A stretch of 64,000 nucleotides of DNA from assembly GCA_904063045.1 (NCBI GenBank), contig CAJFCJ010000014.1, positions 62,001 to 126,000 on the forward strand, read 5' to 3'. Of the stretch, positions 1 through 33,297 are shown piece by piece. The stretch is from Dimorphilus gyrociliatus. Its lineage: Eukaryota > Animalia > Annelida. A model generated the notes under the pieces. The model had not been told where the DNA came from. It saw only the letters and a program-made list of their open reading frames with translations, and ran no database searches. Position numbers and translations under genes: made by a program. Positions within the stretch are counted from its first letter, which is position 1, and each line of letters begins with the position of its first letter.

Positions 1-3000
1 CACAATCCTCCTTTAAGACCAAAAGATGTTTGACAACTTGTACATTTGAGCTCTACTCCATCTAATAAGCAAGTTTTGCATCCAATTGGACAAGGCACAC
101 ATAAATTATTATTTGATTTGTAATATCCACTTTTACAAGATGAACAGGATAATTGATTGCTTGTTGAATCAATACTGCATCCATTGCAACCAGTTGGACA
201 CAACTTACAATTTCCATTTGAAAGGGTACTATTTGCTGTATTACAAGATTGGCATATTGTTTGAGTGCCAGATCGAATAGAGATTTCACATCCAGCCTTA
301 TTTTTGTAGCATTTCTGATCATCAGAATTATAGAAGAATCCAACCTTGCACTTTCCAACATCACATTTATGTTGTCCAGCTGTTGAACATTCCATGCAAT
401 TTTCATCACACTCTGAAAAATTAGCAAAATAGTCATTATCTCTCTCAAAATTATCATTTATAAAAAATTATTGATACCTTCACATGTATTTGGTGTTGGA
501 GATGTGTTTAGGAAAAATCCTTGTTTACAAATCTTTGGTAGAATATTATTAGAAGTAAAGCTTTCATATTCACAAAATGCTATTCCTCTTTCTCCACATG
601 AAGTACATGTTCCATCTGTTCTGTGCTTGATAAAGCCTTCATTGCAGCCATCTCCCAAACAACTAGTTGCATCTGTACACATATTACAGTTTGATATACA
701 AGGAACACAGCTTCCACCACTATCTAAAAAGTATCTATCATTGCATAATAGACATTTATCATTATCAGAAGTATCTTTAGTACATAATTTGCAATTGCTT
801 ATTGAACACTGTTGGCAACTGAAATCTTTATCACTGAAAGAACCTCCATTTGAACAACCAAATTGTAAGCAAATAGAGCTTTCATCATTTACTGGATCAA
901 TTCTACATTCAGAACAAGGAAGTGGAGATGTTGGACATCTGATACATTTCTTTGATGAATTAAGAACATAACCAGAATTACAGTTTGTACATGTTGTGGT
1001 TGGTGAGCCACTTAAATTGACAGTACATTCTAAACAATTTGCTTCACATGGAGTACAAGTTCCAGTTCCAGTTGAAATCAAACCATAGTTATCTTGACAT
1101 TTTGAGCAAGATTGAATAGAATTGGGTGAGGAATTACTTTCAGTGCATACTTTGCACCCAGAAGTGAATGAATTACAGTCAAGACATTGACTTTGATCAT
1201 TGGATAAAATAAAATTATCTACACATCTGCTGCAGCCACATGATTGATCTGCATTTACATTTAAACTGTCAGATTTACAGTGTTGAAAGTTTGCTGCAGT
1301 GCATAAAGTGGCTGTGGTTCTTGGAGTGTTAGTAATTGTTGGAGTAGGTGTTGTTGAAGTAGGAGTTGTTGGTGTAGGAGTTGTTGGGGTTGGAGTTGTT
1401 GGAGTAGGAGTTGTTGGTGTAGGTGTTGTTGGGGTTGGAGTTGTCGGGGTTGGAGTTGTTGGAGTGGGAGTTGTTGGAGTAGGTGTTGTTGGGGTTGGAG
1501 TTGTTGGGGTTGGAGTTGTTGGAGTAGGAGTTGTTGGTGTAGGTGTTGTTGGGGTTGGAGTTGTCGGGGTTGGAGTTGTTGGAGTGGGAGTTGTTGGAGT
1601 AGGTGTTGTTGGGGTTGGAGTTGTTGGGGTTGGAGTTGTTGGAGTGGGAGTTGTTGGAGTAGGAGTTGTTGGTGTAGGTGTTGTTGGGGTTGGAGTTGTT
1701 GGGGCTGGAGTTGTTGGAGTGGGAGTTGTTGGAGTAGGAGTTGTTGGTGTAGGTGTTGTTGGGGTTGGAGTTGTCGGGGTTGGAGTTGTTGGAGTGGGAG
1801 TTGTTGGAGTGGGAGTTGTTGGTGTAGGTGTTGTTGGGGTTGGAGTTGTCGGGGTTGGAGTTGTTGGAGTGGGAGTTGTTGGAGTAGGAGTTGTCGGGGT
1901 TGGAGTTGTTGGAGTGGGGGTTGTTGGAGTTGGAGTTGTTGGTGTAGGAGTTGTTGGGGTTGGAGTTGTTGGAGTAGGTGTTGTTGGAGTGGGAGTTGTT
2001 GGTGTAGGAGTTACTGCTCTGATTTTTCTTAAATCTCTTTTTACAACTAAAGTTGATATAGAATTAGGTAAATAATCTGAGCAGTCTTTATTTGGAAGAG
2101 TAAATTTTTTACCATTTACACACTGAGAATCCAAACATTTCAAGCCATTATCAATCATTATACATTTTTCACAATTGTCCAATGAGCTACAAGATATACA
2201 ACTTTCAATTTGCCCATTTGGATTTAAACTTTCTCCATAGCCATCAAGACACTTTAAACATATGTTTTCACCAGATCTTTTTTTACATAATCTGCAGCCA
2301 TCAGGACATGGAAAACAATTTCCACTTGTATCGTCATATCCATAATTGTCAGCACATTTTGAAGGATAACACATAGGGGTTGATGCTTGATTGTCTTTAA
2401 AGTAGCATTTTAGACAATTCAATGGACATTCTGTACGCATTTGAAGACAATTTTAGATAATAAAAACAATAAAATATTCAATTATGATTGTCACCTGAAC
2501 AAGTTCCATCATTCTTTTTTGTCCATGATTGTCCTTGTTGATTTTCAATACAAGAATGACTGGCGCCATTGCCATTGCATTCAGTTTGTGAAGTTGATGG
2601 ATTGTATGTACAAAGTAGACAATTTGAAGGACATCTACTACATAAATTATCCGAATTTAAAGCATAACCAGACTCGCAACCATTTGTTGAACACACAAGG
2701 TCACCATTGGAATGATGACATTTGAGACAGTTCCTTGGACACAAGTTGCACACCCTTTGATTCAAAAGAGTGTAGTCAGCTTTGCATTTTTTGCAGGTAA
2801 TAACACCATTTTGTTGAGAACACGAATTGCAGTTGAGAGGACAGGGCGAACAAGTTACGCCATCTACAAAATATCCATTTTGGCATTTAATGCATACAGT
2901 TGTTCCAGAATTTCTGCTACAATCTATACACATTGGATGGACACTGCTACATGGTAAACATTCCTTTTGGTCAATTAAAAGATATTGATTCGATAAGCAT

Positions 3001-3864
3001 TTTGTGCAGGTTTTTCCATCAGAACAAGTGAGACAACCAGATATTGCAGAAGAACACAAGTTACATTTAATAGATGCTGTTGATATATCTCTATAGGCAT
3101 TGGAATGGCACTGATTGCAAGTGATACCATTTTCCATGGAGTAGGAGCAAGATTTACAATTCTGTCCACATGCTATGTAAAAAGAAATAGGTAAATAATC
3201 TGTTTCTTTGATGTAGCTTTTCTAGATGATGTTGAAAGAAATACTTACATTTGCAATTGTTCATCGTATCCAAAGTATATTCATTTTTGCAAATATCGCA
3301 AACTGTTCGAGATTGCTGATTACTCCAGGTGCATTTTGAGCATGATGAAGAACAGGCGATGCATTGTTTGGAAACGTTATTGAAGGTGTAATTATCAAAG
3401 CACTGATTGCATTGAATGGAATTTGTACAAGTTTTGCAGGCGGTCGGACATTCTTAAGGGGAAATTGGATAAAGGTTATTAATAATTATAGCTTATAGAT
3501 GTTTGAAAATGTTATAGCTTTGTTTTCTATTGAAAGTTGTAAACTTAACAATGTATGAAATGATAATGTGGTCGAGATTCAATTTAAATTAGTAATTTTC
3601 GCAGCAAGATTGTATGTTTCCTACCTGTACAGATTGTCTTATCTTCGTTTAAAGCCTTTCCAACTTGGCAAAATGAGCAGAAAGTTTTAGCTGTTACCGT
3701 TTGTCCATTTTGGCAATTGTAGATTTCAGTTGTTGTAATTCGAGCCGCTTGAAGACCAACTGCAAAAAGATGTTTCGAAAAGTTATTACAAACTAGTTGA
3801 ATCTACATGACGATAGCCTACCAAACAGTAGAAGAGAGGAGATGATCAAAGATTGAATCAGCAT
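1..3864 (-). CDS. Secreted Cys-rich furin-like/CxxC repeat surface protein, paralogue 1, with (PTPTT)n mucin spacer; 3' end runs off the window
   Basis: Manual splicing. ATG 3864 (MLIQSLIISSLLLF, signal-peptide-like). Exons 3822-3864, 3625-3759, 3249-3452, 2495-3172, 478-2430, <1-412. GT-AG introns 3760-3821, 3453-3624, 3173-3248, 2431-2494, 413-477 all keep frame. Dense CxxC repeats; near-identical to 11281-15658. Confidence 0.9.
1338..2012 (-). repeat. Coding 15-bp minisatellite, about 45 units, encoding (PTPTT)n
   Basis: Plus-strand unit GTTGTTGG(G/A/T)GT(T/A/G)GG(A/T) repeated in tandem; 1441-1500 and 1561-1620 are identical. Confidence 0.97.
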
Positions 3865-11280: not shown

Positions 11281-14200
11281 TTAAAAAAGAATATAGTAGA
11301 TTATAGATAAACCAAAACAAGCAAATGAAAACAGAATACGTCCAGTACCAGCTTTTCCATCTAAATGCCAAGTGTTACAATTTTCACCATAACAGCACTT
11401 TTCACAATGATTAAAACCATCAATCTTATCACATTTCTCATTTTCAGATATTTCAACACATGTTCTGTTTGAGCATTTCCTTGAGTACAATATACCATCT
11501 TTTGATTCAATTCTAAATGCCCAACAATCCCCATTACCACATTCAACCTCCTTTACTTTATCTGATAAAGTATTATTTCCATTTATTGCTTTACCACATT
11601 CACTTTCATTTCCTTCACATTCATAACATTTGCGCCCACATTCTCTGTTATGGTTAATTGGATAGAATCCACTTTTACATTTTAAACATTCTCTTCCATG
11701 AACACATAGTCCACAACCATTAATAGGACAGGAAATACACTCTGATTCATCATCTTTCAGAGCAAAGCCTACACCACACGTCAAACATTTTGCATTCTTT
11801 GCACTTGATTCAGAAGTGCAGGTTTCACAGTTTCCAAAGGTAACATCAGAGCAAAGCCTACAAATTCCATCACTTTGAAGAGAGTATCTGTTTGAATTGC
11901 ATTCTGTACAGATTGAATTTCGTTGAGAGTTAGCAATACATTTTTTACAATTGGATGGACAAACTATACATTGGCCATCTGAAGTTTTTGCATAGCCATC
12001 ATAACACTTTGAACATTCATATCTCTTATTATATGAGCATTCACTACAGTATAATGGACACTTTCCACAATTGTTGCTGTTCACATAAAACTTGTCAGCA
12101 CACTTTTCACAAATCATAGAATTGTCATCAAATAGACAACTTTCACATTCAGAAGTATCACAAGATTCACACAATCCTCCTTTAAGACCAAAAGATGTTT
12201 GACAACTTGTACATTTGAGCTCTACTCCATCTAATAAGCAAGTTTTGCATCCAATTGGACAAGGCACACATAAATTATTATTTGATTTGTAATATCCACT
12301 TTTACAAGATGAACAGGATAATTGATTGCTTGTTGAATCAATACTGCATCCATTGCAACCAGTTGGACACAACTTACAATTTCCATTTGAAAGGGTACTA
12401 TTTGCTGTATTACAAGATTGGCATATTGTTTGAGTGCCAGATCGAATAGAGATTTCACATCCAGCCTTATTTTTGTAGCATTTCTGATCATCAGAATTAT
12501 AGAAGAATCCAACCTTGCACTTTCCAACATCACATTTATGTTGTCCAGCTGTTGAACATTCCATGCAATTTTCATCACACTCTGAAAAATTAGCAAAATA
12601 GTCATTATCTCTCTCAAAATTATCATTTATAAAAAATTATTGATACCTTCACATGTATTTGGTGTTGGAGATGTGTTTAGGAAAAATCCTTGTTTACAAA
12701 TCTTTGGTAGAATATTATTAGAAGTAAAGCTTTCATATTCACAAAATGCTATTCCTCTTTCTCCACATGAAGTACATGTTCCATCTGTTCTGTGCTTGAT
12801 AAAGCCTTCATTGCAGCCATCTCCCAAACAACTAGTTGCATCTGTACACATATTACAGTTTGATATACAAGGAACACAGCTTCCACCACTATCTAAAAAG
12901 TATCTATCATTGCATAATAGACATTTATCATTATCAGAAGTATCTTTAGTACATAATTTGCAATTGCTTATTGAACACTGTTGGCAACTGAAATCTTTAT
13001 CACTGAAAGAACCTCCATTTGAACAACCAAATTGTAAGCAAATAGAGCTTTCATCATTTACTGGATCAATTCTACATTCAGAACAAGGAAGTGGAGATGT
13101 TGGACATCTGATACATTTCTTTGATGAATTAAGAACATAACCAGAATTACAGTTTGTACATGTTGTGGTTGGTGAGCCACTTAAATTGACAGTACATTCT
13201 AAACAATTTGCTTCACATGGAGTACAAGTTCCAGTTCCAGTTGAAATCAAACCATAGTTATCTTGACATTTTGAGCAAGATTGAATAGAATTGGGTGAGG
13301 AATTACTTTCAGTGCATACTTTGCACCCAGAAGTGAATGAATTACAGTCAAGACATTGACTTTGATCATTGGATAAAATAAAATTATCTACACATCTGCT
13401 GCAGCCACATGATTGATCTGCATTTACATTTAAACTGTCAGATTTACAGTTTTGAAAGTTTGCTGTAGTGCATGTTTGAGTTGGTAAACTCCTTTTTTGT
13501 ACAGATCTCTTTTTATCGAAATGAATGATAGGAAATGTTGTTTCAAATGGTGGTAGAGTTGTTTCAGTTGATGCTGTTGATGCAATATTTTCTGTAGATT
13601 CTGTTGACGTTGTTGATGCAATATTTTCAGTAGATTCATTTAACGCAGTTGATTCATCTGAAGCAGTTGATGCATCTGATGGAGTTGATTCACTTGTTAT
13701 GGTTGAGACAGTTGATACAGCCGATGCAGCTTTAGAAGTAGTTACAGATTCTGGAGTTGATTGTGATGTAAGTGTTACGCTGTTAGGATGTGTGACTGGA
13801 GAAGAAGTTGCTCCTTCTGTAGTTGTTGAAGGTGTAGAACTTGGAGTTGATGTTGGAGTAGGTAAATCCTCTGAACAATCTTTGTTTGGAAGAGTAAATT
13901 TTTTACCATTTACACACTGAGAATCCAAACATTTCAAGCCATTATCAATCATTATACATTTTTCACAATTGTCCAATGAGCTACAAGATATACAACTTTC
14001 AATTTGCCCATTTGGATTTAAACTTTCTCCATAGCCATCAAGACACTTTAAACATATGTTTTCACCAGATCTTTTTTTACATAATCTGCAGCCATCAGGA
14101 CATGGAAAACAATTTCCACTTGTATCGTCATATCCATAATTGTCAGCACATTTTGAAGGATAACACATAGGGGTTGATGCTTGATTGTCTTTAAAGTAGC

Positions 14201-15658
14201 ATTTTAGACAATTCAATGGACATTCTGTACGCATTTGAAGACAATTTTAGATAATAAAAACAATAAAATATTCAATTATGATTGTCACCTGAACAAGTTC
14301 CATCATTCTTTTTTGTCCATGATTGTCCTTGTTGATTTTCAATACAAGAATGACTGGCGCCATTGCCATTGCATTCAGTTTGTGAAGTTGATGGATTGTA
14401 TGTACAAAGTAGACAATTTGAAGGACATCTACTACATAAATTATCCGAATTTAAAGCATAACCAGACTCGCAACCATTTGTTGAACACACAAGGTCACCA
14501 TTGGAATGATGACATTTGAGACAGTTCCTTGGACACGAGTTGCACACCCTTTGATTCAAAAGAGTGTAGTCAGCTTTGCATTTTTTGCAGGTAATAACAC
14601 CATTTTGTTGAGAACACGAATTGCAGTTGAGAGGACAGGGCGAACAAGTTACGCCATCTACAAAATATCCATTTTGGCATTTAATGCATACAGTTGTTCC
14701 AGAATTTCTGCTACAATCTATACACATTGGATGGACACTGCTACATGGTAAACATTCCTTTTGGTCAATTAAAAGATATTGATTCGATAAGCATTTTGTG
14801 CAGGTTTTTCCATCAGAACAAGTGAGACAACCAGATATTGCAGAAGAACACAAGTTACATTTAATAGATGCTGTTGATATTTCTCTATAGGCATTGGAAT
14901 GGCACTGATTGCAAGTGATACCATTTTCCACGGAGTAGGAGCAAGATTTACAATTCTGTCCACATGCTATGTAAAAAGAAATAGGTAAATAATCTGTTTC
15001 TTTGATGTAGCTTTTCTAGATGATGTTGAAAGAAATACTTACATTTGCAATTGTTCGTCGTATCCAAAGTATATTCATTTTTGCAAATATCGCAAACTGT
15101 TCGAGATTGCTGATTATTCCAGGTGCATTTTGAGCATGATGAAGAACAGGCGATGCATTGTTTGGAAACGTTATTGAAGGTGTAATTATCAAAGCACTGA
15201 TTGCATTGAGTGGAATTTGTACAAGTTTTGCAGGCGGTCGGACATTCTTAAGGGGAAATTGGATAAAGGTTATTAATAATTATAGCTTATAGATGTTTGA
15301 AAATGTTATAGCTTTGTTTTCTATTGAAAGTTGTAAGCTTAACAATGAATTAAAAAATAATGTGGTCGAGATTCAATTTAAATTAGTAATTTTCGCAGCA
15401 AGATTGTATGTTTCCTACCTGTACAGATTGTCTTATCTTCGTTTAAAGCCTTTCCAACTTGGCAAAAAGAGCAGAAAGTTTTAGCTGTTACCGTTTGTCC
15501 ATTTTGGCAATTGTAGATTTCGGTTGTTGTAATTCGAGCCGCTTGAAGACCAACTGCAAAAAGATGTTTCGAAAAGTTATTAAAAATTAGTAGAATCTAC
15601 CTGACGATAGTCTACCGAACAGTAGAAGAGAGGAGATGATCAAAGATAGCATCAGCAT
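11281..15658 (-). CDS. Cys-rich furin-like/CxxC repeat surface protein, paralogue 2 (1312 aa): signal peptide, Ser/Thr spacer, C-terminal Ly6/uPAR-like domain, GPI-type tail
   Basis: Exons 15616-15658, 15419-15553, 15043-15246, 14289-14966, 12647-14224, 11281-12581 total 3939 nt in frame. N-terminus MLMLSLIISSLLLF; C-terminus KCYECEG...KCCYGENCN then GKAGTGRILFSFACFGLSIIYYILF*. Confidence 0.92.
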
Positions 15659-17190: not shown

Positions 17191-17427
17191 TATAGCTTCG
17201 TTTTGGAGAATATAAGAAAGAAAAGAAATTTTAAAACGTAGTTGCAAAATATTTTTAAATTCCTTTGATCGTAAACAAACAGGGTCAGTGAGGTTGACGT
17301 TGAACGGTAGAGAATAACCTGAATTGATTACGTGGCGGGTGAGGGGAATAAGAAAAGAGCGCAGACAATAATCATAAACGATCTTATTAGAAACTTAGAC
17401 AGAGCGTCTTTTTTATTATCCCTTCCG

Positions 17428-18216
17428 TTAGCAGTCGTAATTGTAAAGTACCGAGGAGGAAAAATCGAGTTTAACTAATTTCTCTTCCGTGGTGAAGAAA
17501 TTTCCGACGCCGACGTCTCCCCAACAGATTTTGTCGTCCTCCGAATCGAGTTGTAAGATTTGAATATAATCTTTATAAGAGGAGTTAGACCTTGGATCGT
17601 TTTGTATGAAATTAGCGTATCCACCTATTTTATGACCTCTTCTATTGAAGAACTCTTCAACTACCTCTTCGTGTTTAGAGGGGAATTTATCGATAAATTC
17701 GTCATATTCCATACCAAAGAACTTTTCGAATCTGCAATCTTGCATGCTAACGTAGTCGTAATCTTTCTCGAAGGTTAGACGGAATTGTTTTATGACTGGC
17801 AGAGTGCACGACGAACTTTTCAAGTGATTGTCGACAAACGAAAAATCTGTTTGCCTATTGTTCTTATCGTATTCTTTCACGTAGATAAGCCGAAAATCTT
17901 TCTGATCCGTTGGATTATCGAAATTCATTCCGTAGACGTCGTCCAAAGCCAAGTAGAATTGAAGTAGGCCAGTCTTCGGATACGAGTTCAGAGTCGGTAT
18001 TTCGTTAAAGTTTAATTGGGCTTGGAGAATAAGGGGATTCCCTTTTGAATCGTAAGGATATTCAATATTCTTTGGAAGGCAAGGATATCCACCCAATTTA
18101 CTGTCATCAATATCAACTTTGACCTTTTCATCGCAAATTATAACTTTAACGTATTCTAGTTTAGATTTCTCGATGACATCTCGATATTTTTGCAGTTGAC
18201 GAGGAATATTGGCCAT
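17428..18216 (-). CDS. ywqG: YwqG / DUF1963 family protein, 262 aa, intronless, bacterial type
   Basis: First ATG 18216 (the track start at 18288 is a non-ATG codon). Motifs SKLGGYPCLP, AQLNFNEIP, GLLQFY, DDVYGMNFD, GHKIGGYANFIQNDPR, WGDVGVGNFF, YNYDC match Bacillus YwqG as I recall it, over the full length. Confidence 0.9.
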   Translation of the reverse strand: MANIPRQLQKYRDVIEKSKLEYVKVIICDEKVKVDIDDSKLGGYPCLPKNIEYPYDSKGNPLILQAQLNFNEIPTLNSYPKTGLLQFYLALDDVYGMNFDNPTDQKDFRLIYVKEYDKNNRQTDFSFVDNHLKSSSCTLPVIKQFRLTFEKDYDYVSMQDCRFEKFFGMEYDEFIDKFPSKHEEVVEEFFNRRGHKIGGYANFIQNDPRSNSSYKDYIQILQLDSEDDKICWGDVGVGNFFTTEEKLVKLDFSSSVLYNYDC

Positions 18217-18823
18217 TTGATAGTGTCGATATACTGTCTGTTTATTGAATAGTATCAAAAGATGATAAGAGTGATACGGAGTTTCCAATAGAAATACTGA
18301 ACGAATTAATCGTTAAACTCATTGTCCTAAATCTCAGTGTTGTTGTTCCGCCCCGCCTCCGTTTTATATGTCATCTGTTTTTGAGTAGATCCTACAAGAC
18401 GACAAAAAATAAAGACAGTCAAATTTATAGGATTAATTGTTCTGCTTTCTTGATAAAGTATAACGTGTAATTAGATCAATAGAAGAAATAGCAATGACAA
18501 CAGCAGCAGCAACAACAACAACAACAACAACAACTTTTAGGACTGTAAGCAAGACGGATAAAACTGTAAGTCTTCGACGAAAATTGAAAAAAATTGACAT
18601 AAAAAATCATTTCGTTTCGCCTATAAATAGTGGAAAATTTTCAAATGGCTTTGTTGCTGTCTTAGTTTCTACCGTTTCTTCTGCTTCTGCTTCTGCTTCT
18701 GCTTCTGCTGCTGCTGCTGCTGCTGCTGTTGCTCTGCTACGAAGGTGGACTGCTAAGAAACAAAAGACCTAATACGATCTAAATTGTAGATAAATATCAT
18801 AGTTATATTTCTCGTGTGAAAAG

Positions 18824-18887
18824 GTAATAAGGAACGTTTGACTTTTATTATACAATAGGATTGTTAATTGTTTTCTTCTGCATCTAG
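18824..18887 (+). other. Probable 64-nt 5'-UTR intron of the oxidase-dehydratase gene
   Basis: AAAG|GTAATA donor and TTTTCTTCTGCATCTAG| acceptor 16 nt before ATG 18904; size matches other introns here (62-76 nt); TATAAA at about 18622. Confidence 0.5.
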
Positions 18888-18903
18888 ATTTCGCTTAGGA
18901 AAG

Positions 18904-21900
18904 ATGGTCAAGATTAAAGATTATGAACCTCTTATTAACGTCAGTACCGATCCCATTGGCAGTCTGGAAACTGATGTGTTGATTATTGGAAGTGGACCTA
19001 TCGGTGCTACGTATGCTCGTAAAATACTGGATGAATCGGACGCCAAAGTGTTAATGATTGACATTGGGGCTTTTGGTTCCGTGGTGCCTGGTGAACATTT
19101 GAAAAATACGTCGGTCTTTCAAAAGGATGTCGACCCGTTTGCGAGTGTCATTCGCGCTCATTGGCATAATCTGTCAACTCCGGTCAATAAGGCTCCTACT
19201 CCTACACTTGGTCCCGGAGCGTTTCGAGTTCCGTCGAATAAGCTTGGTACTTATCAGCTAAAAAATCAGAATCCGGATCAAAAGGATGATGATAATATGG
19301 CGGCTGCCGGCGCGACTTATATGGTGGGTGGTATGAGCACTCATTGGACTGCCGCCTGTCCTCGAATGAATGAGTCGGTTGAATTGCCCGATATCATTCC
19401 TTACGAAGAATGGGAAACATTGTATGACGAAGCCGAAAAGTTGTTTAACGTTTCGAGCGATGTTTTCGATCATTCGATCCGTCATAATTTGGTCAAGCAG
19501 ATCCTAAGAGAGACTTACGCCGATGAAATTCCTCTAGAAAAAAACAAGCCGAAAAGTCTTCCTTTGGCGGCGAGACGTCGTATACGCAACAGCGAATTTG
19601 TTGAATGGTCCTCCTCCGCTACAATTCTCGGCAAACACGCCCAAGATCCGAGCGTTATTTATAGAGCTTCGAATCCGTCGTTGGCCTGTAGTATGGAAAA
19701 GAATCGCTTTCGTATTATGGAGCAGCATATCTGTAGGAAATTGTTTCGTAACAAGGAGGGAAATCATATTGAGTATGCACTCGTTGAGAACTTACTTCAT
19801 AAAAGATTCATTAAGATAAAGGCGAAAATTGTTGTTGTTTGCTGTGGTACTGTGCTAAGCGCCCAATTACTATACGCTTCTGATATTCGCCCTCAAAAAC
19901 TTGGTAAATATCTTACCGAACAGCCGATGGCCTTTTGTCAAATTGTTCTCAATCAAGATACTATCGATAGGCTAACTAAGCCCAATAGCGAATTCGCCGC
20001 AACTATTAAAGAGTATCAAAAAAAGAATCCCAACGATCCTATTCCCATTCCTATGAACGATCCCGATCCGCAATGTTATATTCCCGTCTCCGAAGATAGA
20101 CCTTGGCATTGTCAAATTCATCGTGATGCCTTCTCCTACGGGGACGTTGCTCCCAACGTCGATCCTCGTCTAATTGTTGACTTTAGATGGTTCGGTATAG
20201 TTAAACAATCGGAGTCTAATATGGTTACGTTCAGCGAAGAGTACAAAGACTTTCTAGGAATGCCGCAGCCAACCTTTCACTATACGATCGATTCGTCCGA
20301 TAGAATAACGTTAAGTTCAATGATGAAAGATATGTTGAAGGCGGCTACGTCGATGGGTTCGTTCCTTCCCGGCTCGAGTCCGCAGTTTATGACTTCTGGC
20401 CTATCCGCCCACGTAAACGGTGTAACTAGAATGGGAAAGAACGAAAAAGATTCGGTAGTCGATGTTAATTGCAAAGTATGGAATATCGACAATTGCTTTG
20501 TCGGAGGATTGGGAGTATTACCAAAGGCGGCCGCCTGCAATCAAACGTTAACAACGGCCGCTTTGGCAATTCGTACTGTAAATCATATGCTTAAAACGAA
20601 TATGCTATCCTATAAGCATGCCGAAGTTGATTTCACCTACGAGTTGTCCGGTTCTCCCGATTTTCAAAAGTTAAATTTGGAAGGAAACCGACAGGATGGC
20701 TATTGGATTAGTTCGTCGGACATAAATGCTAACGGCTACCAAGATATTATTGGTTATGGTTTGAATGTTGGCGACATTAGATGGTTTGAAAATCCAAACG
20801 CCAACAAAGTCGATGTACCATTGTCAACGGAAATACCAACAATAACAACAACAAAAACGGCGTTGACCGAAAAGAGTACGAATGGTGTTAATGGAGATCA
20901 TAAGAAAGGTGCCCTAAACGGTTCCACTAACGGAAAGCCAGAAAAATGGACAAGTCACCTGATTACGAAGCTAAATCAGCCAGTTGGAATGGATAGTTTC
21001 GATATTAATCAAAATGGCCTTCAGGACATTATTATTACGTCGGAATACGGACCAAATATGGACAACATAAACGAGAAAGGTGGTCTTGTTCATTGGTTGG
21101 AGAATCCCGGCAAGGATAATTTATCAATGGATAAAGAATGGAAAAAGCACTATATCGGAAGATCAACTGGAACGCATAGACTAGTCGTTGGACATTTTAC
21201 CCAAACGGAGAGAATAGAAGTTCTTATTCTTCCGGTTGTCGGAAAAGCCCACGACGTTCATTCGGTGTGCGAAGTGAAACTGTTTACTTCTCCACCGCTC
21301 AACCAACTCGATAAGGTAAAAGAATGGCAAGAGACGATTGTTGACAACGAGTACTTTCACGTTATTCACGGCGTTGAAAAGAAGAAATACCGCAAAGACT
21401 ACTACGGTGACCAATTAGATTCAGTCCTATTGGCTTCGCAAGAGGGTATCACCTACTTGTACTATTCGACCGAACAGAAGAAATTCGTGAAAAAGAATCT
21501 GGCCAAAGGAACGTTGTGCGAAAAGACTACGACCGGCTGGTATGGATGCGGAAACATCACTTCGGGTAGAGTAGGAGACGATCCATTCGCATATTTGGCA
21601 ACGATTGGACCATTCCACGGAAATGTTGTTGCCGTCTATGTTCGAGATAATGCTGTTTCAATCGGCGACTTGGAGCACTCCAAATTCACGCGTTACGTAT
21701 TGGACGTTTACGGAGAGCCAAACGACAAAGGTGAAGGTCCGGGACATTATATTATTGCCAAGGATTTCGACAACGATGGAGATGACGAATTTCTCGTAGC
21801 TCTTCGAGGCGATCCTCCAACTCAAGGAGTCTTTTATTACAAACCATTTGATTTGAGCAAAGGTCAATTTACAAAGTATCAAGTATCAAAAGATTCAGCC

Positions 21901-23070
21901 GCTCGAATTGCAGTTGCCGACTTCAATAAGAATGGTAGATTGGACTTTGCAACAATTGGCTATTCGGTGAAAACCTATTACGAGGCGAAACCTTGCGAAT
22001 TGAATGTCTATTACAATTCGTTCGATTGTTCAGACGTGAAAACGACTTATGAAATCGTATTGGAAATGATGGAGAAGAAAACCAAAGAAAAATCTGACGA
22101 AAAGGAAGATAAATCTTCCCTTAAAACGGAAGTAGTCGCAACTATTCCTTATCAAAGACCTTCGGCAATTCAACAGAGTTACTTTCTAAAGAAGCAACTG
22201 ATAAAAATCCACAAGCACACCATCTCCTTGGCTTATTTACCTCCTAATAGTTCGGTAAAGATACCCAAAGGATTGATGGCGAAGGTATTGGACGGAGCTA
22301 TATACTATAAAACTTCGAATAATGCGCCTACCACCATGGTAAGGAACGTAATCAATCCTGACGGTACGCGATCGATGAAGCTTTCCAGTGAAGATTTGGA
22401 AATTTGGACTGAGGATGAGGATTCAACTTTCCTGTGGATGATACCCGATTTGGAGTATTTAGACGGCGATGTACCATTCATAAGGAGCGTCGAGTCGGTG
22501 GAAGTAAAAGCGAATTTAGTGGACGAAAAAGTCGTACCATTTGGCTTTAAACCTTACAGAGATATGGGATTTTTCAATATGACTGGCTTTACGGTTCAAA
22601 TCGAGAGAGAGAATAAGAAGACCGGCACGATTGAGCTGAAAAAAATATGCCATATTCAATTTTGGTTGGCCGATAAGGGAGTTGATTGCGGAATTCATGA
22701 CCATTCGGAAACTAAAGGAAATGACGCCTTTTGTGAAATTCACGCTTGCTTCTTGAACGGCACTGGTTCCGGTGGAATGTACAAGCATATCGGCGATATT
22801 CACAAGCCATTCAAGGATATGAAAAAGAATGAGTTTTTATATATAAGAGTTCCCAGTGGTTATGAACACGGTCCCCTATGGGAAATCGATGGGAATGGAG
22901 ACCCAAAACGTCGACCTGACGGCAGCGTAATATACCAACCTCATAGATGGATGGCCGGAGAAGGAGATCCAAAGGAGGCAAAGGAGAGTTCGTACGATTT
23001 TTGGATGGCTTGCGAATTAAATCCAACAATTGTCAATTCAAATTTGATTGAAAAGAGGAATCATTATTAA
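18904..23070 (+). CDS. Fusion of pyranose 2-oxidase (GMC flavoprotein) and aldos-2-ulose dehydratase/isomerase-like beta-propeller + cupin; 1388 aa, no coding introns
   Basis: N-terminal part (about 18904-20592): GSGPIG, VGGMSTHW, HCQIHRDAFSYG, catalytic His (SAHVNG) and Asn (CNQTLT). Middle (about 20630-22020): FG-GAP-like repeats DINANGYQDII, DINQNGLQDII, DFDNDGDDEF, DFNKNGRLDF. C-terminal cupin: GIHDHS...FCEIH...PHRW. One uninterrupted ORF. Confidence 0.92.
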   Translation: MVKIKDYEPLINVSTDPIGSLETDVLIIGSGPIGATYARKILDESDAKVLMIDIGAFGSVVPGEHLKNTSVFQKDVDPFASVIRAHWHNLSTPVNKAPTPTLGPGAFRVPSNKLGTYQLKNQNPDQKDDDNMAAAGATYMVGGMSTHWTAACPRMNESVELPDIIPYEEWETLYDEAEKLFNVSSDVFDHSIRHNLVKQILRETYADEIPLEKNKPKSLPLAARRRIRNSEFVEWSSSATILGKHAQDPSVIYRASNPSLACSMEKNRFRIMEQHICRKLFRNKEGNHIEYALVENLLHKRFIKIKAKIVVVCCGTVLSAQLLYASDIRPQKLGKYLTEQPMAFCQIVLNQDTIDRLTKPNSEFAATIKEYQKKNPNDPIPIPMNDPDPQCYIPVSEDRPWHCQIHRDAFSYGDVAPNVDPRLIVDFRWFGIVKQSESNMVTFSEEYKDFLGMPQPTFHYTIDSSDRITLSSMMKDMLKAATSMGSFLPGSSPQFMTSGLSAHVNGVTRMGKNEKDSVVDVNCKVWNIDNCFVGGLGVLPKAAACNQTLTTAALAIRTVNHMLKTNMLSYKHAEVDFTYELSGSPDFQKLNLEGNRQDGYWISSSDINANGYQDIIGYGLNVGDIRWFENPNANKVDVPLSTEIPTITTTKTALTEKSTNGVNGDHKKGALNGSTNGKPEKWTSHLITKLNQPVGMDSFDINQNGLQDIIITSEYGPNMDNINEKGGLVHWLENPGKDNLSMDKEWKKHYIGRSTGTHRLVVGHFTQTERIEVLILPVVGKAHDVHSVCEVKLFTSPPLNQLDKVKEWQETIVDNEYFHVIHGVEKKKYRKDYYGDQLDSVLLASQEGITYLYYSTEQKKFVKKNLAKGTLCEKTTTGWYGCGNITSGRVGDDPFAYLATIGPFHGNVVAVYVRDNAVSIGDLEHSKFTRYVLDVYGEPNDKGEGPGHYIIAKDFDNDGDDEFLVALRGDPPTQGVFYYKPFDLSKGQFTKYQVSKDSAARIAVADFNKNGRLDFATIGYSVKTYYEAKPCELNVYYNSFDCSDVKTTYEIVLEMMEKKTKEKSDEKEDKSSLKTEVVATIPYQRPSAIQQSYFLKKQLIKIHKHTISLAYLPPNSSVKIPKGLMAKVLDGAIYYKTSNNAPTTMVRNVINPDGTRSMKLSSEDLEIWTEDEDSTFLWMIPDLEYLDGDVPFIRSVESVEVKANLVDEKVVPFGFKPYRDMGFFNMTGFTVQIERENKKTGTIELKKICHIQFWLADKGVDCGIHDHSETKGNDAFCEIHACFLNGTGSGGMYKHIGDIHKPFKDMKKNEFLYIRVPSGYEHGPLWEIDGNGDPKRRPDGSVIYQPHRWMAGEGDPKEAKESSYDFWMACELNPTIVNSNLIEKRNHY

Positions 23071-24641
23071 ATAAATAGAGCTAAAAGAAGAAAGGAGAAA
23101 GAAGACAGTAGCAACAATTGAACAAAAATTTGTTCAAACTCTAAATTATAATTTACCAATACAGTTAAAAAGCCTATTGCGTTATAAAATCTCATATCTT
23201 GCGAAATTGACAAAATTGGTTTGAATTCAATTAGTTGAATTGAAAGGTTTTGAAAGCATTTCGAAATGTCTAGCCCACGCTTATTCCGTATTCAGACAAT
23301 ATAGTTGAAATTCTTGTATTTTCTTCGTTCTTTTAGACTGTTTAGTTTCATTCTGGTAAATGTATAGATAGTCTATCGAATTCAATGGATTAACATTGGC
23401 CTATATCTCTGACATTAGCTTGCCATTCGCCTAGATTGATAACCGGCTTCCATACACCGTTCATGTGGTTCCTACTCCTTCAATGGTTTTCGACTGTACT
23501 GGCAGCCGGTGAGAGCAGAAAGTTGATCCTTATTGCTGCAATACTAGGAATGGGCTTTTTCTTTATTGCCGCTGTGAGTGAGGATTATCTGACTACCGTT
23601 TATAGATAGACATTATCGTAGATGGTAACTTTTCCTTCTCCTGCAAAATCTCTTCGATGTAGTTGAATAGGATTTGAATGAGAATTCTTTTAGAGACGAT
23701 ATTTAACGTGAAATTTAGACGTCTCCAAGTAAAAAAGTGATAATTATCTGTGAAAGTTTGCAGATATCCATTTGGGAATAGAATGGAGAATTTTAGTGTA
23801 ACTTTCATCGACGCTAAAATAGACTGACGCAAGTAATTTTCGTCAAGAAATTCCAGCTGAATTCTAGCCAGGATTTAGTTAATTGCGAAGTACTTGGTTT
23901 CCAAAACCAAAACAAACTATTCGAAGAATCTGGTCGGCCGTCCATTAGAAAATCCAGATTAGTAAAGGAGAGGACGAACTTTGAATTTGAGATATTTGAT
24001 CTATGAGATTGCTGCGAAGATAATCGTACGAAGAAGAGGAAAGAATTATTGAGGATTATAACAAATACCAATGGAATTATCATTGGCAGTAGTGAGAGAT
24101 TGAAAATTTAAACGACGCTCTACTTCGTTCTCTCTGATAAACTAATCTGTTTCAACGAGAATAAAAGACACAATTGCCTGTCAACTTTGATAATTAAATC
24201 ACTTTTGAACCGACTTTCGATCAGGTTTGCTTGTAAAAAATTCATAAACCCTAATTAATCACGTTCAAGTCTTTTATTCATTCAATCATTACAAATCTCT
24301 AGCAAAAGTATATAACAAAATAATGCTTTCTTTATATGTGTTCTAGGTCATTTTAGCGTTATTGTTCTTTTTTATAGCCTAAGAGAGGAAAAAGATGATT
24401 CGGATAGTGTGCTTAGGGTCAAGCACTCTTCTCTAGGCCGTTTACCACTTTTCAAGAGGATTCCTTTATCTTTCCACTTTTTTTCGCTTTCTCCTCTCAG
24501 TTCGCCCCTGTGCCTCTTTAATATTCAATTAAATCAATCCTTGGTTTGTTAATTGAGAATATAGAAGAGTTTTCTTTGAAAAAGAATTTATACAACCGTG
24601 TACGCCATCTATCGAGCAGAAATGGTAATGAACAAGTGGAC

Positions 24642-24642
<1 letters not shown>

Positions 24643-24679
<37 letters not shown>

Positions 24680-27227: not shown

Positions 27228-27791
27228 TTAAATATCTGATCTAATAAGCGTCTTTTTATGAGTAGAACTTGACCACCGAACTTGCTTTCGGCTAGAGTTT
27301 GGTTCTTTACTTTTTCTAACAACCTTCTTCGTTCTCGTCTTCTTTTTTGTCTCTTCTTCGTCGTTATCGTCGATATCTTCTAATACAAATTTGAAATTCA
27401 TATCCTTAAGAACTTTTTTGAAGTCGTCCGATGTTCGGGCCATAATACTGGAAACGCTACTGGGAGCCAAATCTAGAGAATACCGTCTTGGGCTCTCTTT
27501 CGTCTGATTATTTGCTTCGTTCGTAGCGGCACCGGCTCCGGCGGCTATTGAATGTCGTCTATTGGAATGCGTTTTTAGGGCGGGAACTTTTAAAAGGTTT
27601 CTTTGAACTTGTCCTTGAATCTTCCTCGAATATTCTTCTTCGACGTCGTCGTCTTCGTGAAAATCCGAATCGGGATCAACGGTAGTAATGGTAACTTTAG
27701 GTTCGTTCTGGAGAGAAAGTCGTCGGGGAGGCATAGTGGTTGGTCGGTCGGCAGCGTCTGTAATAGCGAGCCGGTTATAAAGCGAAGCCAT
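27228..27791 (-). CDS. 187-aa low-complexity, probably disordered protein with three RRxS sites and a C-terminal KQVRW motif
   Basis: Clean ATG-to-TAA ORF with coding-like composition in microsatellite-rich surroundings; no recognised domain. Confidence 0.7.
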   Translation of the reverse strand: MASLYNRLAITDAADRPTTMPPRRLSLQNEPKVTITTVDPDSDFHEDDDVEEEYSRKIQGQVQRNLLKVPALKTHSNRRHSIAAGAGAATNEANNQTKESPRRYSLDLAPSSVSSIMARTSDDFKKVLKDMNFKFVLEDIDDNDEEETKKKTRTKKVVRKSKEPNSSRKQVRWSSSTHKKTLIRSDI

Positions 27792-31605: not shown

Positions 31606-33297
31606 ATGAATAAAGAGAGGAACGGGGAGATTGGAAGAGGCTTTTGGAAAAGTGGTCTACAGTTTTTCATATGGAATATAGGTTTTGATAACGGGTTTCA
31701 AACCATGTTCCGTTTACCCTATTATATCTATAGGTATGGTTCCCTTTTTTTTATACCCTATTTGGTGACCATGCTTCTTGTGATACTGCCGGTTTGTTAC
31801 TTCCAACTAGTTTTTGGACAAATGGGTGGAACGGGTATTCTAACAATATTCAAAGATAATCTAAGTGGTAGAGGATTCGGATACGCGATATTCACCATGA
31901 GTTTTTTAGGTACTGTTGAGACTATTTTCATTGCCAGTCAGTTTCTAGCCTATTTAGGTGTTTCGTTCTCGGGGATATTCTATGGAAGTTTCTGGTCCAC
32001 CTGCAGCAACGTATACAATACAGCAAGGTGTAAATTATTTGAAGAGAAATGGATACGTTACGACCGTCTATACAATTATACCTACAGTGCTGAACCCGAT
32101 AACACTCCCAGTTTGGAATTCTACCGTGGTTTCATACTGGCAGAAGAATTAGGAGATGGAGAACGGAACGATTTTATTCGTTACGATTCATTTTCAATTC
32201 CATTGTCGATTGCGCTTGCTACCTGTTTCGTTCTGTGCTTTTTTTCCATTAGTAGAGGTATTAAATGGTTGGGAAAAATATCATATTTTCTTGCATCTAT
32301 ACCGTTAATCCTCATGTCAGTACTTTTAACGCGAACCTGTACACTGCCCGGTTTTAAAGGTGCTCTCAAGTGGATTTACTTGCCCAGTTGGAGTAGTCTA
32401 GCCACTGTGCACTTTTGGTTTGACGGTTTTATGGCGGCATGGAGTAGTTACGATTGTATGGGTTGTACCACTATCGTTATGTCTTCGTTTTGCAAACGAA
32501 ATATCAATTGTTTTCAAGTGGCTTATTTAAAAGTATTAGCAAAAATATTTACCAGTCTCTTATCTGTTTTGTTGGTATTTTCCACACTATCCTTTCTAGC
32601 CTACGAACAGAATCTTCCCATGGATAGAATAATCACTTCCGGAAGCGAACTTTTTTTTTTACCTATGAACAGCAGTTTTACGCTTACAAACCAACCCTAT
32701 TTATGGTTATGCCTATTCTATTTTACAATATTTCTATCATTCTTCGTTAATATTATATCGTGTCTTGAAAGTTTAATAGCTTCGATTATGGACCTTCAAC
32801 CAGCAATTTGGTCGAAATCGATTGCTAAACGTGTACTAATTAGATTCATATTTTGCCTTGTAGTCTTTTCGTGCGTCATACCTTTGCTCATTGGCGGAGT
32901 TGGAGAAGGTATATCGCTTAGTATTGATATTGGCTTAGGTTCGGCTAATATAATACTACTGGTTCTCTTTTACTCTTACATGATCGTCTTTTACAATATT
33001 CGGACTTTGACTGAACAATACGAGAATACCTTTGGTAAAAGATTAAATATACTAGCTAGAATATTTTGGGCGGTTCCTGTTCCAGCCATGTTTTGGGCTT
33101 GTTTAGGATATCGAATTATAAGCGGCTCACTCGCGCCGTTTATGTATAAAAATTCAATTTTGTTGTATATAATCCAATGGGTGGTGATTCTCTTTCCCAC
33201 TTCACTTGCGGTTGGATTTCTGTGCACGAAAATAAAGCATTTGCTAATCGCGTGTAAACTTATTACTCCTGCTTCCCAATTCTACGAGATGGAGTGA
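31606..33297 (+). CDS. Divergent SLC6/NSS (sodium:neurotransmitter symporter) family transporter, intronless, 563 aa
   Basis: About 12 hydrophobic segments; FRLPYYIYRYG..FFIPY, FGQ, EL2 WSTC-x8-C, GIKWLGKISY, ISCLESLIASIMD. Confidence 0.88.
   Translation: MNKERNGEIGRGFWKSGLQFFIWNIGFDNGFQTMFRLPYYIYRYGSLFFIPYLVTMLLVILPVCYFQLVFGQMGGTGILTIFKDNLSGRGFGYAIFTMSFLGTVETIFIASQFLAYLGVSFSGIFYGSFWSTCSNVYNTARCKLFEEKWIRYDRLYNYTYSAEPDNTPSLEFYRGFILAEELGDGERNDFIRYDSFSIPLSIALATCFVLCFFSISRGIKWLGKISYFLASIPLILMSVLLTRTCTLPGFKGALKWIYLPSWSSLATVHFWFDGFMAAWSSYDCMGCTTIVMSSFCKRNINCFQVAYLKVLAKIFTSLLSVLLVFSTLSFLAYEQNLPMDRIITSGSELFFLPMNSSFTLTNQPYLWLCLFYFTIFLSFFVNIISCLESLIASIMDLQPAIWSKSIAKRVLIRFIFCLVVFSCVIPLLIGGVGEGISLSIDIGLGSANIILLVLFYSYMIVFYNIRTLTEQYENTFGKRLNILARIFWAVPVPAMFWACLGYRIISGSLAPFMYKNSILLYIIQWVVILFPTSLAVGFLCTKIKHLLIACKLITPASQFYEME

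Follow-up and report, generated by a model that had tools for sequence, protein, structure and literature searches.

Pyranose 2-oxidase (P2O) and aldos-2-ulose dehydratase (AUDH) are the two enzymes of the fungal cortalcerone pathway, which is credited to Koths et al. 1992 as cited in PMC11650716. In the fungal oxidases and in OPOx, the pyranose oxidase (POx) of the cyanobacterium Oscillatoria princeps, flavin adenine dinucleotide (FAD) is bound covalently through a histidine (PMC11650716). The YwqG (DUF1963) family, which is defined by a GGxP motif and a conserved Gln, belongs to the TYPP superfamily, for whose members a protein-binding or chaperone-like role is predicted; no YwqG family member has a known function (PMC4275035). 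Both kinds of gene have precedents in animals: the DUF1963 gene PjDUF1 moved from Acinetobacter-like bacteria into ladybird beetles (PMC12931235), and AUDH genes of bdelloid rotifers are present in public annotation. Here we describe a locus of the annelid Dimorphilus gyrociliatus in which a YwqG-family gene and a gene encoding a P2O-AUDH fusion lie head to head. The window analyzed is a stretch of 64,000 nucleotides, positions 62001-126000 of the 2,241,898-bp contig C14 (CAJFCJ010000014.1), and all positions are those of the window unless stated otherwise. In the literature searched, we found no paper on the transfer of AUDH or P2O into animals nor on foreign genes in Dimorphilus. We consider it fairly probable that both genes, which are intact and lack introns, descend from non-animal ancestors, are embedded in a native worm chromosome, and were acquired in separate old events that left them head to head.

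The larger of the two genes, the P2O-AUDH fusion, is a new element. Its plus-strand open reading frame (ORF) spans 18868-23070, and from the first ATG at 18904 it encodes 1388 residues with no internal stop. The predicted protein begins with a P2O domain (residues 1-565, 18904-20598, defined by TIGR02462 and PDB entry 9FL2), followed by a linker of ~19 residues between the P2O C terminus and the AUDH N terminus (20599-20655, from the ends of the 9FL2 and 4A7K alignments). Next come the seven-blade beta-propeller of AUDH (20656-22038, PF22301 plus FG-GAP repeats), which includes a low-complexity loop at ~20821-20973, and the AUDH cupin region (22039-23067, PF18637). Neither a signal peptide nor an end resembling a type 1 peroxisomal targeting signal (PTS1) was seen by eye in the fusion protein. 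The initial annotation had called this gene a microbial-type oxidase; the protein is more than an oxidase, and its AUDH half is of the full-length eukaryote type.

To find further fusions, we searched 5.8 billion protein clusters by word index and within a length limit. Among the 22 significant proteins, the P2O-AUDH fusion occurs in two clusters only, the window's own and that of P0002. The former also contains P0143, a 99%-identical variant from Logan. P0002 has 1387 residues and is 68% identical to the worm protein over its full length in the alignment (66% by BLAST). By domain, the identity is 78% for P2O and 62-67% for the parts of AUDH. Variable regions between these two proteins, hereafter the worm pair, are limited to the low-complexity propeller loop and a short acidic stretch, and 17 of the 37 residues at the junction are conserved. 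The Logan contigs of P0002 and P0143 exceed the ORF by only 184-216 nt, and to judge from this they look like transcripts.

The P2O half is matched by TIGR02462 over residues 23-563 (profile positions 1-544 of 548, 543.6 bits). Its best PDB match is OPOx (9FL2, 410 bits); the fungal P2Os score 320-344 bits and the glycoside 3-oxidase 7QF8 161 bits, which places the worm half nearer to POx than to the glycoside 3-oxidases. The GSGPIG motif (FAD-binding GxGxxG) and the GGMSTHWT motif align with 9FL2 and 4MIG. Three further elements, SAHVNG with its His, ACNQTLT with its Asn, and the loop HRDAFSYG, likewise align with the fungal and OPOx residues, and we take this His and Asn to have the catalytic roles of His548 and Asn593 in Trametes P2O. 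The worm half therefore has STHWT, DAFSYG, and the His/Asn pair in common with the fungal enzymes of Phanerochaete chrysosporium and Trametes (4MIF, 1TT0), yet its higher score against OPOx sets it nearer to the bacterial POx. Like OPOx (PMC11650716), with which it aligns from end to end (residues 21-564), the worm half would be of the covalent-FAD type; in contrast, OPOx is a stand-alone protein on a long branch of the P2O tree, with ~38-43% identity to the worm half.

The wider set of relatives agrees with a bacterial type of oxidase. The best 120 of 673 matches are pyranose oxidases with 46-53% identity, and the best bacterial ones reach 600-646 bits; identity to bacterial POx is 47-53%. 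Named relatives within these 120 belong to Chloroflexota, Actinomycetota, Bacteroidota, and Bradyrhizobium, and most of the 120 are metagenomic proteins. In the P2O tree, which was built without fungal P2O sequences, the worm pair is sister to two Logan proteins with a support of 100, and this group lies inside the bacterial POx radiation. These two, P0144 and P0145, are stand-alone P2Os and the closest relatives of the worm half, and their Logan contigs are 2.0-2.2 kb long. The N terminus of P0144 is extended by 100 residues that are not bacterial-looking, and both proteins may come from another eukaryote.

The AUDH match extends from residue ~585 to residue 1388. PF22301 matches the propeller with an E value of 2e-50, and PF18637 (AUDH_Cupin) matches at profile positions 8-308 of 308 with an E value of 4.4e-50. 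The Phanerochaete AUDH structure (4A7K) aligns over its propeller (residues 75-478) and its cupin (residues 584-731). In an alignment of 17 AUDHs, the putative metal-binding cupin motif HxH..E..H (H685, H687, E698, and H700 of the AUDH part) is invariant, as are several propeller histidines. The worm alignment stops at residue 731 of 900 of 4A7K, and the C-terminal lectin domain of the fungal enzyme is absent. This domain is probably not defining for AUDH, since the rotifer and ascomycete AUDHs (764-859 residues) also carry no lectin-type Pfam domain; the Lentinula AUDHs carry PF14200. Thus, the worm half and fungal AUDH have the propeller and the cupin motif in common and follow the same pathway order of enzymes, whereas the worm half is only 31-37% identical to its fungal counterparts, lacks the lectin domain, and shares one polypeptide with the oxidase, in an animal.

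Named full-length relatives of the AUDH half are found in bdelloid rotifers (36% identity), fungi (28-33%), and one streptophyte alga; four metagenomic full-length AUDHs fall in the rotifer clade. The bdelloid proteins (Adineta and Rotaria, P0003-P0009) resemble the worm half in being full-length propeller-plus-cupin proteins encoded in an animal genome and free of a lectin domain. Bdelloids are therefore a second animal lineage with this otherwise fungal or microbial enzyme, but their proteins have no P2O half, form a separate clade (100/99), and share 36% overall identity with the worm. In bacteria, the related genes are propeller-only, encode ~400-460 residues, and are 40-47% identical to the worm propeller. 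The propeller tree resolves four separate groups, namely, rotifers (100/99), fungi (98/90), the worm pair (100/100), and bacteria (88/77). The cupin region, as judged from its alignments, is of the eukaryote full-length type. AUDH also appears joined to other partners in two gene models. In P0015 of Mesotaenium endlicherianum, it appears fused to an alpha-amylase domain, likewise a sugar-processing enzyme in a eukaryote, although the partner there is a GH13 amylase domain rather than P2O and the protein lies on a long separate branch. In the Rotaria model P0009, it appears fused to phospholipase-D domains.

Bacterial genomes contain gene clusters that recall parts of the fusion. In seven Streptomyces loci (L035:7025-11236; also L031, L038, L039, L042, L047, and L081), a P2O-like GMC oxidase gene, a xylose-isomerase-like TIM-barrel gene, and an AUDH-propeller-only gene lie on one strand. 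The oxidase gene is 1.1 kb upstream of the propeller gene, in the same order as in the worm fusion, but the genes are split, with the TIM-barrel gene between them. Because the oxidases are only 42-43% identical and belong to a distant clade, we rejected this cluster as the donor. In the cyanobacteria Vasconcelosia and O. princeps (L002:907-6154 and L010:9974-15583), a propeller-only gene is followed by a weakly cupin-like gene of 245-252 codons and then by a GH31 gene; by gene content, this looks like the anhydrofructose pathway in a bacterial form divided among several genes. The 245-252-residue protein has no Pfam AUDH_Cupin match, and its identity to the cupin region of the worm is only 23%. 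On the propeller tree and these comparisons, the fusion may be chimeric in origin. In the O. princeps genome searched, the OPOx gene is not beside the propeller-GH31 cluster; the two are on different contigs.

Glucan lyase yields 1,5-anhydrofructose, which is a substrate of AUDH. The worm genome contains an intron-less GH31 ORF of 1155 codons on a 25.7-kb contig (G000:C158:12532-15999, L170:4533-8000), unlinked to the fusion, whose best PDB match is an alpha-1,4-glucan lyase (2X2H). Its product is 31-41% identical from end to end to the cyanobacterial GH31 proteins whose genes neighbor AUDH-like ones. It retains QDMT, the nucleophile motif, but has LSDRN in place of the acid/base motif WTGDN. 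Given that its relatives adjoin AUDH-like genes in cyanobacteria, the worm would thus carry, in the fusion and the GH31 gene, two unlinked pieces of the same sugar chemistry.

The smaller gene lies on the minus strand, in an ORF at 17428-18288 whose first ATG is at 18216. It encodes 262 residues (17428-18216) with no intron and no internal stop. PF09234 (DUF1963) covers profile positions 1-216 of 216 with an E value of 6.7e-58, and Bacillus subtilis YwqG (PDB 1PV5) matches residues 2-262 with 216 bits. Both family hallmarks, the GGxP motif (here GGYP) and the Gln (Q205), are invariant in the YwqG alignment, and the ORF ends coincide with the ends of the bacterial homologues; this is, therefore, a YwqG-family gene of the TYPP type. 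The worm gene agrees with B. subtilis YwqG in the full-length match, both sequence hallmarks, length, and termini, and differs from it in lying in an animal chromosome with eukaryote-style flanking signals.

All of the best 120 of 340 DUF1963 matches are bacterial or metagenomic (38-50% identity), and the closest of them is a bacterial protein with 50% identity. In the DUF1963 tree, the sister of the worm protein is P0024, which is encoded on a dense, co-directional 125-kb contig of 33.5% GC that is clearly bacterial. The worm protein belongs to no supported clade of this tree; for this reason, we rejected the donor suggested by the initial annotation, which had described the gene as Firmicutes-like. 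As in the ladybird PjDUF1, a YwqG/DUF1963 gene of bacterial origin has been fixed in an animal lineage. The host phylum is different, however, and so apparently is the donor, as the worm gene falls outside the Acinetobacter clade.

Both genes are set in animal DNA. Genes for an SLC6 transporter, TMEM144, a rolling-stone-like protein, and a rhodopsin-type G-protein-coupled receptor (GPCR) lie in the same 64-kb window, and the neighbor on the upstream side, encoded on the minus strand, is rich in Cys and has large exons at 11281-14931. Downstream of the fusion gene, Tandem Repeats Finder (TRF) located (GT)n, (GA)n, and (AG)n microsatellites at 24643, 25087, and 26367, respectively. The initial annotation had placed two microbial-type genes within animal DNA, with animal microsatellites on the downstream side, and the family matches, neighboring genes, and repeats bear this out. 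With host genes flanking them on the same contig and their nearest relatives outside animals, the foreign origin of both genes is well supported. Each is present as a single copy in the genome.

The assembly searched comprises 77.9 Mb in 349 contigs, and the published PacBio assembly of D. gyrociliatus has ~78 Mb in ~350 scaffolds with an N50 of 2.24 Mb after four rounds of decontamination. This genome is compact, with ~209 genes per Mb, a median intron of 66 bp, and short intergenic spacers as the rule, and it retains many ancestral introns (PMC7854359). The two foreign genes have a coding GC content of 0.38-0.44, which equals that of host exons, and the non-coding flanks have 0.32-0.35. GC content at third codon positions (GC3) is 0.427 and 0.426 in the two genes, compared with 0.37-0.40 in neighboring host ORFs. 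Around the gene pair, we found no target-site duplications or transposon remains, only microsatellites. To test for a subtelomeric hotspot of foreign genes, we screened the beginning of contig C14 for telomere repeats and found none; the locus is 80 kb from that contig end.

What the encoded proteins may do can be proposed by homology. Gene 1 encodes a bacterial YwqG-family protein, predicted to be a protein-binding or chaperone-like module, and gene 2 a single polypeptide that combines a bacterial-type P2O, predicted to be covalently flavinylated, with a full-length-type AUDH. The P2O half would oxidize D-glucose at C-2 with O2 to give 2-keto-glucose and H2O2. The AUDH half would then dehydrate and isomerize 2-keto-glucose to cortalcerone or, alternatively, convert 1,5-anhydrofructose to microthecin. 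The fusion may represent a one-gene version of the two-enzyme fungal pathway, and its pathway order and short linker would favor the hand-over of the reactive ketoaldose from one active site to the other. As to history, the two genes were most likely acquired in separate old events and ended head to head, and each now has a TATA-like box, an AATAAA at its stop, and a host-like codon composition. Transcription of both genes and the activities of their products are predictions drawn from sequence. Only position links the YwqG gene to the oxidase-dehydratase, and by analogy with its superfamily its product is expected to be a protein-binding module.

A more ambitious proposal, which we put forward as tentative and rather doubtful, is that cortalcerone or microthecin, an antibiotic pyrone of fungal type, is produced in this animal by a fused enzyme acquired from microbes. 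The enzyme would channel 2-keto-glucose and release H2O2 within a borrowed anhydrofructose/ketoaldose toolkit that includes the unlinked GH31, and YwqG would be co-expressed with it as a protein-binding helper. If the enzyme is active, a meiobenthic worm can make H2O2 and an antibacterial pyrone from glucose, which would be a case of borrowed chemical defense or of borrowed sugar metabolism; in addition, the fusion would offer a ready-made biocatalyst for producing cortalcerone. Three features of the locus are new: a two-step microbial pathway is contained in a single animal gene; the fusion has been kept by an annelid whose genome is very compact and otherwise conservative; and the same genome has a glucan-lyase-like GH31 whose bacterial relatives adjoin AUDH-like genes. 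Moreover, the pair illustrates that adjacent foreign genes need not imply a single transfer.

The head-to-head arrangement raises the possibility of a shared bidirectional promoter and a co-regulated functional pair in which YwqG would serve, for example, as a chaperone or adaptor for the oxidase-dehydratase. The start codons are separated by 687 bp (18217-18903, GC content of 0.345), which is within the 1 kb expected of bidirectional promoter pairs, and TYPP domains have been proposed as protein-binding or chaperone-like modules (PMC4275035). The spacer contains an (ACA/CAG)n trinucleotide repeat at 18497-18534 (TRF) and a (TCT/GCT/CTG)n repeat at ~18668-18738 (TRF and sequence). These form two inverted arms (18498-18523 and 18706-18731) of 26 nt that are 85% complementary and 182 nt apart, and their roughly symmetrical placement between the two genes would also suit a common control region. 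On the other hand, each gene has its own TATA-like box: a TATAAAA on the minus strand at 18362-18368, ~150 nt upstream of the YwqG ATG, and a TATAAAT on the plus strand at 18622-18628, 282 nt upstream of the fusion ATG. These boxes, whose promoter role is putative, are ~250 bp apart and would point to two core promoters. A 687-bp head-to-head spacer is ordinary at ~209 genes per Mb (PMC7854359), and no genomic association between YwqG and P2O or AUDH genes was seen in 160 loci. We therefore regard a shared promoter as unlikely.

Several other signals at the locus are of eukaryote style. An AATAAA hexamer (TTTATT on the plus strand, 17412-17417) lies 11-16 nt past the YwqG stop, and the TAA stop of the fusion gene overlaps another (TAA and hexamer at 23068-23075, hexamer at 23070-23075). 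In this window, only 3-7% of randomly chosen sites have an AATAAA within ~20 nt, or of TAA triplets one after them; its occurrence at both genes is thus modestly more than chance and constitutes modest evidence for eukaryote-type 3' ends. A GC box (GGGGCGG, 18350-18359, minus strand) lies just downstream of the TATAAAA box, and the sequence scan gave a further TATAAAT on the minus strand at 18429. Upstream of the fusion ATG, a 64-bp segment (18824-18887, plus strand) is a candidate intron of the 5' untranslated region: it opens with GTAATA, closes with a pyrimidine tract followed by TAG at a distance of 16 nt from the ATG, and is close in size to the host median of 66 bp. In these respects, the initial annotation was accurate: it had described two genes without coding introns diverging from a ~690-bp spacer, AATAAA at or just past both stops, and CAA/CAG and GCT/TCT repeats with a TATA-like box in the spacer, although such boxes are present on both strands.

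The initial annotation had further proposed that the pair is a domesticated island of horizontal gene transfer (HGT), that is, that both genes arrived on one piece of donor DNA and have been adjacent ever since. The genes are immediate neighbors 687 bp apart, their GC3 values are nearly equal and their observed-to-expected CpG ratios (CpG o/e) are similar, and their identities to the best bacterial relatives are comparable (~50% for DUF1963, 53% for P2O, and 47% for the propeller). Nevertheless, equal GC3 would be expected anyway after long amelioration, and together with the similar distances to bacterial relatives it is compatible with either model. The initial annotation had suggested a check for ywqG-like genes beside P2O or AUDH genes in bacteria, and we found no such linkage. 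None of 80 bacterial AUDH-propeller loci has a DUF1963 gene within ±10 kb, and none of 80 metagenomic DUF1963 loci (0.70 Mb) has a P2O or AUDH gene.

The nearest relatives also appear to differ from part to part: DUF1963 falls in no supported clade, P2O falls within the bacterial POx radiation, and AUDH forms a lineage of its own. The idea that the donors may differ, raised in the same annotation, is accordingly plausible. In addition, the fusion has a 68%-identical counterpart from a second source, whereas no DUF1963 relative above 50% identity was present among the best 120 of 340 matches, and no YwqG orthologue turned up alongside P0002. Similarly, Logan yielded the 99%-identical fusion variant P0143 but no near-identical DUF1963 protein. 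Part of the island proposal holds, in that the genes are foreign, intact, and integrated, and part does not, as the 160 loci give no sign of a single transferred block. The absence of linkage and the different nearest relatives favor separate acquisition, which we judge on these sequence comparisons to be quite likely; a single donor fragment appears improbable. Chance adjacency or a permissive locus is plausible as the cause of the present arrangement.

Several observations weigh against the interpretation that we favor, namely, two intact microbial-type genes acquired separately and long resident in the worm. First, if the two genes were inserted independently, finding them side by side would be somewhat unlikely, except at a permissive locus. 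Second, the propeller tree makes the worm pair its own lineage. An approximately unbiased (AU) test run in IQ-TREE under LG+F+G4 favored the bacterial side and did not reject grouping the worm with rotifers (P = 0.145) or with fungi (P = 0.20), values that are approximate as the constrained searches were truncated at ~30 iterations. Third, the TIGR02462 score of the P2O half is 1.3 bits short of the equivalog cut-off of 544.9. Fourth, CpG o/e is 1.3-1.5 in the foreign genes and ~1.0 in host ORFs, a small residual difference. Finally, P0002 could come from a related worm or from something nearer to the donor, and the junction support here is that of the published long-read assembly.

The genes could instead be decaying relics whose ORFs are open but whose function or expression is gone. 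In line with this, the acid/base motif is lost in the GH31 gene, which is unlinked but belongs to the same sugar chemistry. In the fusion, however, the catalytic and metal-binding residues are retained, and a stop-free ORF of 4.2 kb in AT-rich DNA would be hard to maintain without selection. P0002, at 68% identity, retains its full length and all motifs, and the Logan contigs of P0002 and P0143, as noted above, resemble transcript contigs. For these reasons, we consider decay very improbable.

It is most unlikely that both genes go back to an animal ancestor through vertical descent and were lost nearly everywhere else, for example, with an AUDH half shared with rotifers since an early spiralian ancestor. 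The presence of AUDH in bdelloids, whose propellers are 40-44% identical to that of the worm, and the failure of the AU test to reject a worm-plus-rotifer clade are in line with such a history. Yet no other named animals are found among the AUDH matches or among the best listed P2O and DUF1963 matches, the rotifer AUDHs have no P2O half, the best trees set the worm pair on the bacterial side rather than with the rotifers, and the genes lack introns although the genome has retained many ancestral ones.

Contamination or a chimeric assembly, by which the genes would belong to a worm-associated microbe, might be suggested by the lack of coding introns and by a coding GC content above that of the flanks, but it is very unlikely, to the point of being hardly credible, because the DNA on either side within the 64-kb window is AT-rich, of animal type, and contains animal genes as well as microsatellites, the 2.24-Mb contig was built from long reads in a decontaminated assembly, and the raised GC content matches host exons; moreover, AATAAA occurs at both stops and no bacterial genes adjoin the pair.

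Other features of the window concern the surrounding DNA. The large Cys-rich exons at 458-3137 and 11281-14931, both on the minus strand, belong to two paralogous genes without a Pfam match, with a GC3 of 0.16-0.20 and a CpG o/e of 0.1-0.15. A minus-strand ORF of 187 codons at 27228-27791 has a GC content of 0.43 and a CpG o/e of 1.6, values similar to those of the two foreign genes, and no Pfam or NCBIfam match. The SLC6 (SNF) transporter gene at 31606-33297 on the plus strand encodes 563 residues in a single exon. Its best PDB matches are the animal transporters GAT3, BGT1, and TauT (for GABA, betaine, and taurine), it has no bacterial NCBIfam match, and by these comparisons it looks like a native animal gene despite having no introns.

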